A stretch of DNA of 62,690 bases, filler included, from Choristocarpus tenellus KU-1152 (lineage: Eukaryota; Protista; Phaeophyceae): the NCBI GenBank assembly GCA_964200185.2. It is 10 parts of 10 records of this genome, joined end to end, with 100 filler letters (N's around TTAATTAATTAA, not from the genome) between each part and the next. Parts side by side here need not be neighbours in the genome. Positions count along the whole stretch, not along the records: positions 1 to 6,718 come from CAXNAD020007494.1; 9 more parts are not named here. One strand, written 5' to 3'. The position numbers and the translations under genes were made by a program. Shown one piece after another: positions 1-8,178 of the stretch (within the stretch, counting starts at the first letter, position 1; the number at the start of each line of letters is the position of its first letter). Under the pieces are notes generated by a model. That model was given only the letters and a program-made list of their open reading frames with translations. It was not told where the DNA came from and did not search any database.

Positions 1-3000
1 CCCCCGGCGAAAACAACTCTACGAAACTGGCAGCAAGGCGTAAAGTCCCTTTGACCAGAGTCCTTCGAGGTACTGAAGGAAGTCTGTGAGACCTCGTCAC
101 CACAGGTTGACCGCAACGTAGTCACACTAAACTATCTGAGAAGCGAGGAGTTTGCCGGCTTCACTTCTCTCAAGCAGGGGCTATGCATCCATCTGCTTGC
201 TAGGCAAGTCAAAACTCCACTGTGTTTTATCGTGTAGACAGCAGTAAGCGCAATTTGTGCAGGTTGCAGCACATTGCACAGGAATGTGAAATAAGTGTCT
301 CGTGCGATGAAGAAGGTAGTCGGCCATTGTTGTGTCGAACGAAAATCCCTTCGTAGTATTCTGGGAATTCTACAAACAGTGTGTGTTTCCTGTGTATGTG
401 CGCTCTCGTCTTTTAGGAAGTATGACAATCGATCCATGAATATTTGCTGCAGTGGCGACCCTTTCCTCTTCATAACCTGCGCATCGTTCTCGTTGACGTC
501 CTTCATGGCAATTCTATTTTAGCAGGTACAAGTCGTTCTACAGGAAGGTTCCTACGGCGAGGGACCACAAGGACATCGAATCGGCCGTGCACATGTCTGA
601 GATGGTTATCTCACGCACCAGGCAGATTGTGCCCAAGGAGAAGTGGACACCAGAGCTCCAAAGGTTGGTAAATGGTGCAGTTGCAGCGGTTATCTTTTTT
701 TGCCTTTTCCGTATCTCCTGTTCACCCATACGTCGCCATGCGCCCCTCAATTGTAAAGTATACTCTCAGCGTCTTTTTCTGCACTGCACTTATTGATTGA
801 TGCAAAACCGCTCTGAATTCCGGATGTTACATGAATGATGCATGGGCCGCCAGAGAAATGGACAGGCTCGCATACGAGAAGTGCAGTATGCACGACCTCT
901 GGGTCAAGCCCCACTACGAGGAGAGGAAGAAGGAGGTGGCCCAACTTTTGCAGAAGGTTTCATCTGGCGACCAACAGGCGGGGCCCGTCCGCCAACTGAG
1001 GGCAAACATCGCCACGGTAGTCGGAATGAAACCTCTGCAAAGGGTCAGAGCCGTGAGTGTGCCTCCTGTGTTCGTAATTACAGCTGAAATGGCTTGTACC
1101 GAAAAAAATAGTTGATGCTTGGTAGGATTGGTGGTGGGCCTTCGTCATCATCATGAGCGACAGAGTTGCCTTCCCTGCAACAAACGTTGCTGTTTTGTCA
1201 GTTCTAGTCTTTCGTTGCTAATAGCGGGAACAGCCAATCGTTTCCTTCAACTGTAGATAACGATCTTGGTCAATCTCCATCTCGTTTCTGCCTCCAACAT
1301 GCGTCACTGAAAAAACCTACATACAGACTGGCGTCCTCGACATGGACTTATTTTAAACTATTTCGCCCCACAAGCCGCCTCCATCAAACACGTTCACCAC
1401 ATCAACCATATCGTTTGCTCTGTTCACTCCTCCATGCTGTTGTACTTCCATTACACTATCACATTTTTGACGTCACCATCGTCCCCTCCTCTCCTCAATA
1501 ACGTCCTCCGCCGTGTCCACCACTACATTTTCGAGAAGGACTCGACTCTACGCGCTTACCTCACCGCCTGGGATGGGAAATACCAGGATGTACTCAACCA
1601 GGTCAACCTCCACCAGGTTCACAGCGGGCGGGGCTGTGATGTCGGCGGCGCAGAAGTTGAGAGCAACAACGGATCGGGATCAGATGGCTGTAAGAAAGAA
1701 GACGAGGGAGGGCGCGAACACCAAGGAGGGGACGAAGAGGAGGGAGGGAACGGACTGCCAGACAGGGAGGATACGGGCGAAGGGGGTTCTGTCAGCAGTG
1801 TTCCTGGTGCGGAAGTAGAACAAAACGGCCATGGAGGGTGGAACGCAGGCGTTTGCCTTACTGAATGCAATCCTCCACCTACGTCTCGGTGAGTGATGTA
1901 GTTGTAACGGTGCACACGAGGATGGAGTGTAATTAATGGCGTAAGATTGGTTTCCATCCAATCCCCCAAACAGATAGATACGTTGTATCTTTTCAGTGGC
2001 GCACGCCATTGAACCGATGGTATGTTGAGGGGTCCCTCTATGTGTGACGCTGCGGTTGCTGTCCCCACGTCTCTTTATTTGCCACTGTCCGATTGTGTGT
2101 TAATGCATGTACATCACCGACTGTTGTATCTCACCTGTACTACTTTGTGCTGTTTAGCGCGGCCAATTTCGTGGTCCTTCGTAACCGTGGATCCCCCGCG
2201 TTGCGTTGTTGCGCCCAAATAATGATCTAGAAAAATACTATCCTGTCTGTTTAACGCTCTGATTCGATGACACGCGCGATAGGTATTCATGCCCAAAGGG
2301 CTCCATCACGCATATGGGCGAATGTGCCTATGTGGAGATTATAGAGGACGAGATGCACAAGGATCGATTATGTATCAATTGCCCCATGGAACAGGAGGGC
2401 AGTGAAGGGTCTGGATCGGTGGGGAACGAAGCGGCGGGTCGGGGCAGGGGCAGGGGCAGGGGCAGGGGCATGGGTAAGGCTCACGCAAGGAGCACAGGCG
2501 GGTCACCCACGACGCAAAGCCTTTTACGTCCCCCCTCACGCAGCGAAACGGCGGACATGGAGAAGTGCATGTGGGTCTCGGCATGGTTGCACATTATACA
2601 GACATACAAGTCGTCTCTGCGTGTTTATTTTCGCGTTGGTTTGCACATAGGTCTTGGCTGCTTGTACATCATGTGGATTGCTCGTCCTTTGTGCCAAGGA
2701 TGTGTCGTTTTTTTGGAGGTTTCCATGGGCCATGGAACTTAGTGTTTTGACGTCTACCCTCCTTCCATGAGATGTATCTGACGAGTCTGGTGTTGTGGAG
2801 GGTACGGCTTGACATTTTGGAGATGCCGTGGAAATATTGTCAGGACCTCACTTAATGAAAAGATTGCCTGCACCGTAGCTTACTACGCTGTCCTTCTTGT
2901 CGTGCTGTCTGTCTACTGTGTCGTGTGTCATGATGTCCAAGCAGGAGTGAAAACACCGCACTACACGACCTTCGCCCTCTCAACCCCACGGTACCCTTAG

Positions 3001-6000
3001 ACCACCTGAAAGAGTTCGCCTTCCGCAATGCGCCAAAGCTCGCCATAGTGTCCATTGCCGCCGAGTCAAGACTCCTCAATGACGAAGAGGCGACCAACAC
3101 ACACTTGCGCCAGGTGCTTAAGTGCTTTGCGGGTGAAGATACATCCTCAGGGCACCCTCGCGCTCATTGTGCCCCACCTGTGGATGGCGTAATTACACCA
3201 CCTAGGCAGTGAGTTGCAGAGTTCGCAAGCACTGGAATACGGGGTATATTGCAGGAGACTGTTGCGATCCGCCATGGTGGTTATCATTCCGTCCGTGGCC
3301 CATCGAATATTATGCGGCCGTTCAGGAGATGCGGATTAGGTCGTGTGTCTTTCTTTTCACTTTCCCCATGTTATTTTATGTCCTTCGTACCTTCTACTTC
3401 CTTTTGTGCCGCTTGCTCTTTCCCCCGGGTCCTTCGTAGTTCTTTGTTTCATTGTACGCGAATCGCATGCTGGTGTTACTTGTCTTCACTACATTATTTT
3501 TGCCATATTTTCTTCTATTATTACTTAATTTCCTATTGTTTGCATTTTTTGCATTTGTTATTTGCCTTGTATTCCACACTCATTGTACTATTATAATGTT
3601 AGTGGTATGAGATTTCGTGAATCCCTATGATAACTACTTGTGTGATGTCACTGTCAAGTTTGATGCATGCTGGACCCACGCACTCGCTCCTGCATTCTAT
3701 TCATTCAGAGGCTCTTATGGCGTCAAAGGTGGGCTTGATTGTGGAGGATCATCCCCTAAGCCTAATATACAAGACGAGGGGGGGGGGGCGCCCTCAATTG
3801 GTTACTGATAACCATCTCAGATGTTGACAGGACATTATTATTCTCGTGCACAACGATGGGACAATGCTAACATGCAATAAGCGAGTCACGGTCGACGACA
3901 TCTTTGGCCATGGGCGTGATGCATCTCCTCCGGTACTCCAAACCATGTTGGACGTCGAGTACGAAGGTGCTGCAACGGACATCCCCATGAGGGCCCTCCA
4001 CTTCCTCGTTAATAGGTTCGTTAATAACGTCATACACACCCTTCTTCACAGAAGCAGCGATTTTTTTTTGTATAGGTGTAGTAGATCGTTAAACAGTAAC
4101 AGAACGAGCTGGGTGACGGTTCAGGGGCGTCGAACCATCCCACGAGTTTGTTTCCCCGAATCGGTACGTTAAGCGTCGAACCGCACCAAGAGTGTGTTGC
4201 CCTGTATTGAATGTTACTCATACATTGTGATATGATGAATCCGTGCGCAATACAATATACTCCATAGGGATTAATTGACGAATTGCCCTCCTATGATAGG
4301 TATACGAATGCTGGGGACACCGTCGTCTCCTACAGCACAGAGAGGCACAACGTGGTGGAGACGGCCCTTGAACGGAGCAGGAGGGTGGAGGTGTTCGTGT
4401 CCAACGCGGCGTCAAAGGACGAGGTGAAAGAGACGATGGACACGTCCTTCGGCCAAGCCTACAATGACGGCAAGTGGAAAATAAGAAGGGTGTACTGAAT
4501 TTTTTTTCCATTGCTTTCCAACTTGTTGTCTGTCTTGGTTCGCTATGGATAGGTCTCGGGCGTGCAATTGTACTAGTGATGTTTCCTTGTAGATGTTTAC
4601 ACGTTGCTAACAGGGTGCATGCAGTTACCCACACCACCGCTGGAAATCGCGAGTCCCCAAGACTTTGGTGTGAGCGTCGATACTTCGTATTGTCCTCCTT
4701 CCCCACACGAACAAAAAAAAAACGTGCTGCAGTACACCACAATATCTTTAACCAACGCCGGAATAACCCATACATATGTGGCGAAACCTTATCGCATGGC
4801 TAATCCACTTCGCTGCCACATTGTTGGGCTGTCACATGTACACACATGATGTTCCAGGTATCCACGTCTCTTGTTCAAGAACGCGTGATAGGCCCTTCCT
4901 GCCTGCAGGAAGCCTTGGGGCAGACCCTCGTCCCAACGGAGACGCAGCGATGTTTTGCTGAGGCCGTCAATCCTCAGGGAAAGGCAATGGGACGCGATGA
5001 GGCGACAATTTTCGTTGCGATGACAGTGGCAACAGGCTTCAACTACCAGATCGAGGTGAATGTGGTATAGAATGCACTAACTTACGTATTTTGTGAAGAA
5101 CGAACGGCAGAGTTTAGTTACCGGCACCCAGAATACACTCTTTTTTTTTATTCCCAAGTCCTAACCTACCTAATGCGGCACCCAAATACGTCGCGTAGAA
5201 AACTGCTGGCCTAGCAGGTAAGTATTGGATCGGTAGTGTGTTCGACTTTTTTCCACAATAATGGTTGCCGTTTATGCACCACCTCCTTCAGACGATATTA
5301 CTTCCAAATCACAAACATTCATGAATTGCCATACTCTGCCCCCCCCCCCAGCACCCCTCGACCCCACCCAACCCCACCGCCGTCTTTGCCTTCCACAATA
5401 TTCAGCCGCGTACAAGCTCGTCCTCGAATCTCGCGGAAATGGTCTTATTCCCGCTTGAAGGGAAAGACTACAAAGTCGGCGGAAATGACCTCCCTGCATG
5501 GGGTGATCTCGAAGTGTGCAACTCTCGATCAGAGGCCTTCAGTTCGACCTCTCTTGAAGACCAAGAAGAACAGTACATTCGTCTGCTTCATGTGGCCAAT
5601 AACAGACAACTCAAGCGCATGCTTTCGCCTGGAATGGAGGTGTGTGGGCCAGGCGCAGAGCTCTACTTGCGCGTGACAGCCACTTGCCCTCTCTACTACA
5701 TGCGTTGGACCGAGAAGGCAGACAACGCCAACATTGAATTCCCGTGAAAAGTGCCGCAGAGCGGAAGCCGTCAACAGGTACCCCTCCCCTTCTCCCAGGT
5801 TGGCCCCGGGCAGATGTTCGTCACGCCCGTGGTTGGGAGATTGTGCAAACCTCGGGCAAAGAATGACACCAGATCACCATTCAACGCACTCCCGGGTCTT
5901 AGGGTAATGCGTTCTCGAGGGTTCAAAGTGGTGGATTCGGACTCTGAATTGACGCCAATGACCACTAGAAAGCGCAAGTGTCCCTCTTCCCGCACGGGTG

Positions 6001-6448
6001 GAAAGGGGAAAGGTCACAAGGTATGGAGGGGCACCGGTGATTCTGCCATGGAAGACGACCCGGACTATGTCAGCAACACGGAGGAAGACAAGGAGGAAGA
6101 AGAGAATGGTAAAGAGTATAATAGAGAGGAGGATGAAGGAGATGACGAATAGGAGTAAGAAGATAATCGGGACGGAGGGCGGGAAGGAGGGGGGAGGGGG
6201 GGAGAGGCGGGCAGGCGCACACGTTCGCAAAGTAATGATTGACCAACGGCAAACAGAGAATACGTGAGTGTTTTTGTTGATGATATCTCGTTTGTCCAAT
6301 AGTTAGTTCAAGGAGGTTGTTCGTGTGTCTCTTGAACTCCCGGGAACATGCTTACCAGAGTCGGCGCCCATTATTGCTTCAGGTGACGTGCAGAATTTCG
6401 CGAGGTGGCAGAGGGAAGAGGGGTACAACGAATGAGCAGCAAATTTAA
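1..6448 (+). pseudogene. Copy 1 of a repeated multi-exon gene: PHD-like finger / RG-rich linker / beta-class DNA amino-methyltransferase-like fold / SET-like domain / acidic tail; 5' end lies outside the window
   Basis: Phase-compatible exons read by hand: ~1202-1888, 2209-2570 (PHD-like), 2945-3208, 3709-4015, 4300-4480 (MTase-like: ...KIHPQG...TDIPMRALHFLVNR|YTNAGDTVVSYS...ALERSRRVEVF), 4858-5055, 5406-6263 (SET-like plus acidic), 6383-6448. Upstream coding-like pieces at 1-105, ~526-663 and ~815-1052 are less certain. Disabled by in-frame stops (e.g. TGA 52-54, 3825-3827, 5745-5747), frameshifts, a mutated acceptor (2206-2208) and a mutated donor (4481). Confidence 0.7.
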
Positions 6449-6718
6449 AAACCTGATGTTTTATTTTATTTTATGTGACGCAAGTTTTTTTTACTATATT
6501 TTAGCCCTGGACTGTGGTGGCCTTATTCTCCCTCTCCCTGCTCTTCTCTTGCGATGGATTACAAGTCCAACAACTTGCACGAGAAAATAGATAAATGCGG
6601 ATCGGCGGATCGGACAGGCAGGGTGGGGGGGGGGGGGGGGGGGGGGGGGCACCACAACAAAAGGAGGGGGGGGGGGGGGGGGGGAGGGGGAGGGGGGGGG
6701 GGCGGGGCGGGGTCAAAA

Positions 6719-6818: not shown

Positions 6819-8178
6819 AAATGGACAGCCGCCACCCCCCCCAGATACTTTGAGCCTTGACATTAAATGAGGAACAAGAAGCAACAAACAAGACAGGATG
6901 TAACGCACACATAAGAAGAGACTGTACTGTTCACAATAATGAATGACCTTCAAACACCCAACAGTAGTAGTGGTAGAATATCAGGAATCAAAAACCAACT
7001 CCATCCAAACTGCTAGAAACCTACGCACTACTGGTAATTACATCGTATCTAAGATCAAACTGAAACATACGAAACGCACACAGCTGAGATCTGTACATCG
7101 TTTTTCGTCTGTGAATAGCAAACGGGTGTAAGTGTATTATTGAAGGATCGCCATTTGGTTGGTTGCATATTCTACTCTTAACCATTGAACAACATTACAA
7201 TTATCGTTGTCCCCCTCTCCATCGTTGTTATTGAAATCAAAGTTCTGAATGGAGAGGATTTGAGACTTCCAATTTCGCGATTAATTGACTGGGTTATTGG
7301 GGAAGGGGCGAGAAAATTGGTGTCCTGGTAGGGTGGTGATATGTCCCTGCCTCCCGACATCAAGGTGACACCCACACAGCCACCACACACAATCTAAATT
7401 TATTGAATCGGTAGTACATGTCTACACACGTCATCATGCTCGATACCAAGAGAAACCTTTTTGGAGGCGTGTACACACAGATGATGCGCACAATTGATAG
7501 AATAATACATAAAATAATATTCGGTTCCAGTTAATCGCGATATAATTGATGAATCCTATATTTATCGGTGCCGATTCACAACTCTGATATATTTCCATTT
7601 TGGCGTTGATGTTGTGAGGCACAGTCAATCAGTCCGTATTGGCGGAGTACCACTGTCGTGATGCATGGTCCGAATAATCACCAATGATAGAGAAATGTGC
7701 ATGCAGTACACTTATGTGTATGCTGGTATGTGGATTGGACTGAGACCAGGTTCTAACTAGGAATGTCCGTCGCATATATATTCCATTGATTGTTATTTGT
7801 ATGAAGGAATTCCGCGCGGAATCGCCGAATACAAGGAACACACGCTCATACGATTTTCACATATATATATATATTGAACTTTGAAAGATTGAAGAGATCC
7901 AACGTCTCGAACAAATTATATATGGAAATTTGAGAGGGGGACGAGGACAGCTGTTGGTAGTGGAAAAGTCAACATTGAACGATTAAAAACAAATATAGAT
8001 GTCTCGACTATACTAAACTCAAGTAATCTTTATGGCAGAATGCCTCCTTGTATGAACTTTGTAGTTTCAAACCAACCTCACCAGCTTCCCCCCCTCCCTC
8101 TACCCCTATCACTCCTTTGTTCTCGTTGTATCCACGACACATACACCAAGCATCTTACATATTCCCAGTACATCAAAG

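Follow-up and report, generated by a model that had tools for sequence, protein, structure and literature searches.

A decayed transposon gene in the brown alga Choristocarpus tenellus: a probable Sola1-type accessory gene with a methyltransferase-like fold

A 62,690-nucleotide stretch of DNA joined from contigs of the brown alga Choristocarpus tenellus KU-1152 opens with a broken, repeated, intron-bearing gene, which raises the question of whether this gene belongs to the chromatin machinery of the alga or to a mobile element, and of what its protein does. The gene lies in positions 1-6718, the whole of contig C7494 of an assembly (G000) of 164 Mb in 27,310 contigs, and this contig is referred to below as the window. 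A preliminary description of the same DNA read the gene as a multi-copy, mobile chromatin protein in which a plant homeodomain (PHD)-like finger, a prokaryote-type DNA amino-methyltransferase and a SET-like domain were fused. What the window holds is an inner part of a giant brown-algal DNA transposon of the cut-and-paste kind, with most of the accessory gene that this element carries beside its transposase. Taken as a whole, the locus is probably a decayed internal copy of the accessory gene of a Sola1-type transposon, combining a ParB-like part with a beta-class methyltransferase fold.

The window as an internal piece of a transposon

The repetition of the sequence was readily confirmed, as at least 54 matches with 83-94% identity were found from 504 first-look candidates among the contigs of the genome, and the window represents a single decayed member of a family of hundreds. 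A comparison of the copies gave no bias between synonymous and nonsynonymous substitutions in any of the six frames, and the copies therefore decay neutrally. Homology among them extends past both contig ends: upstream it reaches over more than 6 kb, and downstream it stops after about 0.53 kb, where the copies terminate at '...GAGAGGCTGTT' and the flanks beyond are unrelated. The repeat is thus dispersed and much larger than the window, which falls inside it.

A complete element of 17.9 kb was found at L071:957-18887 in an Ascophyllum-like genome (ENA assembly ERZ26962164), the proteins of which are 98% identical to 'Ascophyllum nodosum' entries. Three loci in this genome (L071-L073) have terminal inverted repeats of about 690-720 bp, and two of the three copies have perfect 4-bp target-site duplications (CCAT and TATT), which fit the 4-bp duplications reported for Sola elements (Sola2). 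The copies in this genome are 98.5-99.6% identical, and such near-identity points to recent activity. The element consists of two divergently oriented, intron-bearing genes, a DDE transposase and the accessory gene. The transposase was recognised by its match to Pfam DUF7869 (E 5e-21, L072:15327-15608), and its naming as a Sola1 transposase follows that given to the Ectocarpus family in a recent paper (PMC12477816).

The same pair of genes occurs in the genome of the window. DUF7869 gave at least 150 scored matches in G000, all above the cut-off, from 385 candidates, and on at least 13 contigs it lies, in divergent orientation, about 2.4 kb upstream of the segment ahead of the accessory gene (L040:1-500). 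Exons of the N-terminal part of the transposase were also found upstream of the gene in sister copies from the window's genome, and beside the Ectocarpus gene. The 3' end of the element is reached in the window's genome, with terminal bases similar to those of L071-L073. Thus, the mobile, multi-copy gene of the preliminary description is upheld, as the accessory gene of a DNA transposon.

These observations bear on the alternative that the sequence represents a family of host chromatin genes multiplied by duplication, or a domesticated gene, outside any transposon. Homologues carry the ordinary annotation 'unnamed protein product' in several brown-algal genomes and there is selection between lineages, both of which would suit a host gene, but in three genomes the accessory gene always adjoins a divergent DUF7869 transposase, inverted repeats and target duplications bound the unit, and its hundreds of copies decay neutrally and include deletion derivatives and nested insertions. 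A host gene is thus highly improbable.

Further features of the element were noted. The contig G000:C23907:1-1990 joins window positions 2-1687 directly to 6314-6616 and is an internal-deletion derivative of the element. An insert of about 258 bp occurs at varying sites in several transposon copies, sometimes in both orientations (Table 1), and looks like a small non-autonomous transposon, similar to a miniature inverted-repeat transposable element (MITE), nested in the large one. The edges of the window are a short run of five C's (1-5) and a G-rich tract of homopolymers with few other bases (6600-6718); breaks at these points recur in other contigs of the family, which suggests a failure of assembly or sequencing rather than biology. 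L072:16952-17923, at the transposase gene's 3' end, is a long open frame with Ser/Asp-rich stretches and the string '...VHWYTP...' and without a Pfam match, which may encode a C-terminal targeting domain of the transposase. Two genes of kinds typical of other mobile elements lie outside the element, namely a Peptidase_C48 (Ulp1-like) gene near the Ectocarpus copy (L069:20883-24195) and an rve integrase gene beside one Ascophyllum-like copy (L073:19062-20465).

Exon structure, decay and selection

A multi-exon gene traverses the window on the + strand, in the order of parts that had been proposed: a helical part, an acidic linker, a Cys cluster, a Gly-Arg (GR) repeat, the methyltransferase-like block, a conserved C-terminal block and a basic and acidic tail (Table 1). 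The window does not hold the whole gene, which starts further upstream, where the ParB-like exons sit. The splicing agrees with two annotated protein models that map to the window with common exon borders and GT/AG sites. The first, P0081 from Choristocarpus tenellus (512 aa), maps at 51-83% identity, and at 67-83% from the second methyltransferase-like exon (m2) onward, covering 3127-3208, 3709-4015, 4300-4480, 4858-5055 and 5406-6149; the E values were 7.5e-52 for m2, 6.9e-29 for the third such exon (m3) and 2.3e-125 for the last exon. GT/AG borders are present at the exons mapped by P0081, except where the window is damaged. The second model, P0035 from Ectocarpus (829 aa), has 11 exons in its own locus (L069) and aligns to the window exon by exon, with 32-36% identity to its exons. 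Its residues 550-576 correspond to window 3145-3225, residues 571-693 to 3708-4046 (E 1.3e-16) and residues 683-743 to 4298-4480 (E 1.4e-7).

A full HMMER search of 1.84 billion proteins with the sister-copy exon L018:2204-2815 returned 34 homologues, among which were the annotated spliced Ectocarpus proteins P0014, P0019 and P0035. P0035, P0014 and P0037, all from Ectocarpus, are direct homologues of window exons. The search of related genomes that had been proposed found homologues in Ectocarpus, the Ascophyllum-like genome and other brown algae, with common exon borders. In tblastx comparisons, only the exon blocks are conserved across species, in five other loci. A second, much more divergent family of the gene, with 20-38% identity to the first and its own Cys cluster, was observed in the Ascophyllum-like genome (L074:5006-6893), and several lineages of the element therefore coexist in one genome.

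The window copy is a pseudogene. Besides the stop in its first exon, in-frame stops lie at 3190-3192 (TAA, in the first methyltransferase-like exon, m1), 3825-3827 (m2) and 5745-5747 (last exon), frameshifts lie near 2193-2262 and 3120-3127, and the splice donor of m3 at 4481 is AT in the window and GT in other copies. Other copies have longer open frames on the + strand where the window is broken. Between the window family and its nearest other lineage (L076) the ratio of nonsynonymous to synonymous substitution rates (dN/dS) is 0.25-0.35, a range that indicates purifying selection on the protein between lineages.

Table 1. Features of the accessory gene in the window, and a nested insert in other copies of the element (positions without a locus name are those of the window)
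Feature	Position	Strand	Landmarks and matches
Exon, N-terminal helical region	1..204	+	Enters from upstream; in-frame stop 52-54; L074:553-753, 34% over 67 aa (tblastx); frame open across the contig start in L032:3488-3760
Exon, helical region	521..670	+	Ends '...KWTPELQRLV'; P0035 residues 207-256; L070:7412-7555
Exon, helical region	849..1058	+	L076:153-368, 41-52% identity (tblastx); surrounding open frame 801-1112 in window, 672-1112 in many copies
Exon, end of helical region, then Gly/Glu/Asp-rich acidic linker	1491..1889	+	L076:669-848, 40% over 60 aa; Ectocarpus acidic exon, L069:12086-12253 (both tblastx)
Exon region, Cys/His cluster, GR repeat and basic linker	1937..2574	+	Cys/His core 2287-2385; GR repeat 2437-2469; ends '...ADMEKCMW'; frameshifted near 2193-2262; single open reading frame in L004:2125-2925 and five other copies; basic linker kept in L076:1122-1235 (tblastx)
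Methyltransferase-like exon m1	2937..3208	+	Strand beta-4 and degenerate motif IV position, 'KLAIVSIAAES', 3036-3068; ends '...HPQGTLALIVPH'; donor GTGAGT at 3209; L076, L075, L070, L069 (tblastx); P0035 residues 550-576; P0081 residues 3-37
Intron m1-m2	3209..3708	+	Skipped by annotated models P0081 and P0035; no cross-species conservation
Methyltransferase-like exon m2	3709..4015	+	'...VEDHPLSLIYKTRGGGRP...FLVNR'; donor GT at 4016
Methyltransferase-like exon m3	4300..4480	+	Degenerate motif I region, 'YTNAGDTVVSYSTERHN...RRVEVFV'; acceptor AG 4298-4299; aligned across six lineages (alignment A6)
Short linker exon	4858..5055	+	'VSTSLVQERV...NYQIE'; acceptor AG 4856-4857, donor GT 5056; P0081 residues 191-261, E 1e-32; L076:5069-5281 (tblastx)
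Last exon	5406..6152	+	Conserved C-terminal block about 5445-5830; basic 'RKRKCPSS' 5967-5990; acidic tail; stop codon 6150-6152
3' untranslated and subterminal part of element	6153..6718	+	G-rich run about 6600-6718 at contig break; copies continue past 6635; true element end in other copies about 0.53 kb beyond the break
Nested insert of about 258 bp	L032:3960-4220, 6020-6277, 7219-7478; L003:137-395; L011:4025-4283; L009:70-317

The methyltransferase-like block and its neighbours

The central block was studied through its Ectocarpus homologue (P0035:495-750). In the ESM Atlas, all ten rows of the structure search with a model of this segment were PF01555 (N6_N4_Mtase) proteins, with template modelling (TM) scores of 0.62-0.69 across 189-213 residues; ParB_N is present as well in three of the clusters. 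An AlphaFold2 (AF2) model of the segment, with a predicted local distance difference test (pLDDT) score of 55.7 and a predicted TM score (pTM) of 0.53, gave beta-class DNA methyltransferases as the top 30 Foldseek matches (best E 8.7e-3). In an exhaustive VIA search with the same model, the top 11 matches were all beta-class or type III Mod methyltransferases (Z 8.4-5.9), including N4CMT, M.BceJIV, CcrM, M.RsrI, M.MboIIA, M1.HpyAVI, M.PvuII and TTHA0409, and the next match, an MT-A70 protein, fell to Z 4.5. The modelled segment has the permuted class I arrangement, in which the half with motif IV precedes the half with motif I. These models support a beta-class N6-adenine/N4-cytosine DNA methyltransferase fold for the central block, and they supply, through the homologue, the class I amino-methyltransferase matches expected by the preliminary description for 2945-4480. 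MAFFT misplaced the short m1 and m3 fragments, and m1 is shallowly sampled and poorly modelled because both were left out of the folding alignment. In alignment A5, MAFFT set m1 ('KLAIVSIAAEP...') onto m3 ('GDTVVSYSAER...'); the two strand-loop units are alike, which may be a chance likeness or a convergence of two degenerate motifs.

The prokaryotic methyltransferase of the preliminary description thus stands in its fold, but not in its catalytic motif or in its N6_N4_Mtase profile. The 'DPPWW' string proposed as motif IV (3266-3280) lies in the intron between m1, which ends at 3208, and m2, which starts at 3709, and is kept in none of 21 other copies. The residues that follow strand beta-4 in six lineages are SIAA (window), SFAA, SIAA, NPGA, DLTR and NVGA, and the tetrapeptide [DNS]PP[YFWH] is present in no coding frame or annotated model of the six. 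Motif I (FxGxG) is degenerate in alignment A6 ('VSYSAERHN', 'LLFGAEHNTG', 'LSVCGESNE', 'MSTSGDRDK'), and a trace of it was seen only in L070 ('LGIGVETTS'). The Pfam profile PF01555 gave no match on window exons, longer open reading frames of sister copies, P0035 or P0014, and a six-frame search of the whole genome found no match to it inside the element.

The main alternative is a working DNA methyltransferase, of the N6-adenine or N4-cytosine type, that would mark the transposon's own DNA, as proposed in the preliminary description and as predicted in print for the Ectocarpus element Sola1-1_Ec32, where N4-methylcytosine (4mC) or N6-methyladenine (6mA) is the expected product (PMC12477816). 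The beta-class fold, the purifying selection between lineages and the motif I trace of L070 speak for such an enzyme. Nevertheless, in all six lineages the motif IV position is without a D/N/S-P-P-aromatic tetrapeptide and is not conserved, the tetrapeptide is found nowhere in the coding frames, the FxGxG loop is replaced ('VSYSAERHN', 'LLFGAEHNTG'), and neither P0035 nor any of the pieces is recognised by the PF01555 profile. An active methylase is therefore unlikely.

Loss of the motifs in all six lineages, together with the selection between them, argues that the protein is most likely a non-catalytic DNA-binding accessory factor, and the balance tilts, by a modest degree, towards the absence of catalysis. 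The gene would have descended from a phage or plasmid ParB-methyltransferase fusion, and the protein would recognise the element's own DNA, for example the tandem repeats between its genes or the long terminal repeats. This recognition would then aid transposition or shield the element from silencing, a role comparable to that of the second protein of other two-gene transposons. Such a role, binding the element's DNA in order to help transposition or to block silencing, is proposed tentatively. A more specific version, in which the methyltransferase fold acts as a sequence- or base-reading 'pseudo-methylase' that joins a ParB-like clamp on the tandem and terminal repeats of the element and recruits the transposase or blocks silencing, is doubtful, and more so than an active enzyme. 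It is less likely still that an unconventional active site marks DNA in a group where DNA methylation is believed to be absent.

The region before the methyltransferase-like block holds a Cys/His core of the form C-x2-C-x4-H-x3-C-x(11-17)-C-x2-C, with six invariant or near-invariant ligands. It is kept in four lineages (the window family, L070, L074 and L075), in which R, C, C, H, C and C are invariant; the Ectocarpus model and L076 lack it. The C4HC3 pattern of a PHD finger calls for eight ligands, spaced C-x2-C ... C-x2-C-x4-H-x2-C ... C-x2-C. The first pair of these ligands is not conserved, Pfam gave no PHD match on window 2263-2739 or L004:2125-2925 at E<=5, and a family profile of the cluster searched against the PDB found no PHD and only insignificant rubredoxin- or GATA-type knuckles. 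By its sequence, the cluster is of a zinc type and confined to some lineages; the Cys/His cluster seen by the preliminary description is thus real, but its assignment as a PHD-like finger is not borne out by the searches.

The C-terminal block is strongly conserved (L070:11982-12320, E 4e-23; L069:16334-16654, E 3.5e-10; 23 homologues), and the SET domain assigned to it was not recovered. None of the 23 homologues matches Pfam SET at E<=1, a family profile of the block found no SET chain in the PDB, and a genome-wide SET search listed 19 places, of which none falls on contig C7494 or on another contig found to carry the element, despite its hundreds of copies. The positions of the SET signatures NHSC and ELxF/YDY are not conserved (alignment A1), and the 'NS' string is replaced by YTSP, YDTK or YRSR in other lineages. 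An AF2 model of the block was unusable (pLDDT 38.2), and an Atlas feature search with the C-terminal open reading frame gave no usable match. A very divergent SET domain, in a methyltransferase-SET fusion like PAG2 of the red-algal Plavaka elements, might be suggested by the N6-adenine methylase and SET accessory protein reported in Bostrychia transposons and by the loose 'NS...' and 'GAELY' strings on which the assignment drew; given the negative searches and the replaced 'NS' string it is very unlikely. The proposed pairing of a histone reader with a histone methylase has no evidence behind it.

Upstream of the window, a 'LDG(N/A)HR' motif, reminiscent of the ParB core 'DG.HR', was seen by eye in three lineages. 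The ParB-like exons gave only weak profile matches (KorB 0.038; PHROG ParB 0.69), and searches of the ParB exon by Pfam, PHROG, PDB sequence and PDB family profile gave nothing significant, as did a family profile of m3 against the PDB. Pfam searches over every stretch without a stop in the window and sister copies found no methyltransferase, MT-A70, PHD, SET or ParB domain, and profiles for N6_N4_Mtase, PHD, SET and ParB, with exons searched singly, gave no significant match. The 'LDG(N/A)HR' motif hints at a ParB-like N-terminus. The space between the two divergent genes contains tandem repeats of about 207 bp, varying in number between copies (L032:85-1261, some 2.3-3.5 kb upstream of window position 1). 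By analogy with a proposal for red-algal elements, the ParB-like protein might bind to these repeats.

Brown algae carry integrated viruses, and a fragment of a phaeovirus-like virus with a viral ParB/methyltransferase gene would agree with the phage ParB_N + N6_N4_Mtase clusters among the nearest structural neighbours. However, the gene is interrupted at conserved positions by GT/AG introns of spliceosomal type, the 18-kb element around it has a DDE transposase, inverted repeats and 4-bp target duplications, and a tblastn search of the methyltransferase-like domain against 50,697 phage records found nothing; a PHROGs search gave weak hints only. A viral origin of the fragment is the most improbable of the alternatives, its likelihood being close to negligible.

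Several points weigh against the explanation as an accessory gene with a ParB-like part and a methyltransferase fold. The predicted splicing is founded on annotated models, conserved borders and GT/AG sites. The fold models are middling, with the pLDDT given above for AF2 and 0.49 for the whole protein in the Atlas, and they depict an Ectocarpus homologue, 32-36% identical to the window exons, in place of the window's own protein. No significant profile match (Pfam N6_N4_Mtase, ParB_N or PHROGs) was obtained on any exon or on P0035, and the ParB-like assignment draws on the motif seen by eye, the weak matches and the published description (PMC12477816). In the window's own genome, element ends and target duplications were not seen at the 5' side. 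Finally, the loss of canonical motifs does not prove the loss of all activity.

Significance and comparison with known systems

For annotation, the transposon reading means that hundreds of brown-algal 'unnamed protein' models are pieces of one transposon accessory gene, not host chromatin genes, and the published observation in Ectocarpus is extended to several more brown-algal genomes. The printed idea that the transposon methylates itself needs a direct test because the catalytic motif is missing everywhere.

The architecture had been regarded as undescribed, but a gene of this kind was published in 2025. Sola1-1_Ec32 of Ectocarpus is a 21.5-kb element in which a 1104-aa protein is encoded opposite the transposase, on the other strand, and this protein was described as carrying both a ParB-like and a DNA methyltransferase domain (PMC12477816, Genome Biol 2025); comparable accessory genes have been described for transposons of red and green algae. 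The window element matches this family as described in print: both are giant DNA transposons (21.5 kb against 17.9 kb in the Ascophyllum-like genome) with the gene opposite the transposase. The window differs as a decayed copy in another brown alga, in a lineage with an extra Cys/His cluster that is absent from the Ectocarpus model. Whereas the paper predicts methylation, the catalytic motif is missing here in every lineage.

Fusions of ParB_N and N6_N4_Mtase (PF02195 + PF01555) in phage and plasmids rank with the closest structural neighbours of the methyltransferase-like domain and have the same order, with the ParB-like part first and the beta-class methyltransferase after it. These fusions keep DPPY, FxGSG and their Pfam matches, and the brown-algal family is without all three; in addition, it has introns, long acidic and basic linkers, the Cys cluster and an extra C-terminal domain, unlike the phage and plasmid proteins. 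The best matches of the AF2 model (Z 8.4-7.1) were N4CMT of bdelloid rotifers (PDB 8s9n), M.BceJIV, CcrM, M.RsrI and M.PvuII. N4CMT is likewise a eukaryotic recruit of the bacterial beta class, but it is active as an enzyme, carries a fused chromodomain and is encoded by a host gene, whereas the present gene lies on a transposon and has lost the catalytic motif.

A further comparison is with the accessory genes of the Plavaka elements of the red alga Bostrychia, in which PAG2 encodes an N6-adenine methylase with SET, PAG3 encodes ParB with a 2-oxoglutarate (2OG) oxygenase, and tandem repeats lie beside the ParB gene (bioRxiv 10.1101/2025.02.11.637652). There too, giant DNA transposons of algae carry accessory genes in which ParB-like and DNA-modification domains are combined, with tandem repeats adjacent (207 bp in the present element). 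They differ in belonging to Plavaka/EnSpm rather than Sola1-type elements, in splitting the domains over two genes, and in carrying SET or 2OG domains, which were not found here.

Other eukaryotic recruits of methyltransferases from phage ParB loci have been described, and the methyltransferase domain of DIRS1 is inactive (Iyer et al. 2016, PMC4738411). The domains of the DIRS1 retrotransposon and of METTL14 belong to PCIF1-like and MT-A70 clades, in contrast to the beta-class, PF01555-like fold of the brown-algal gene, and the types of element differ. Nonetheless, they offer the same pattern as that proposed here, in which an amino-methyltransferase fold is kept under selection after its active site is lost, in DIRS1 likewise within a mobile element.

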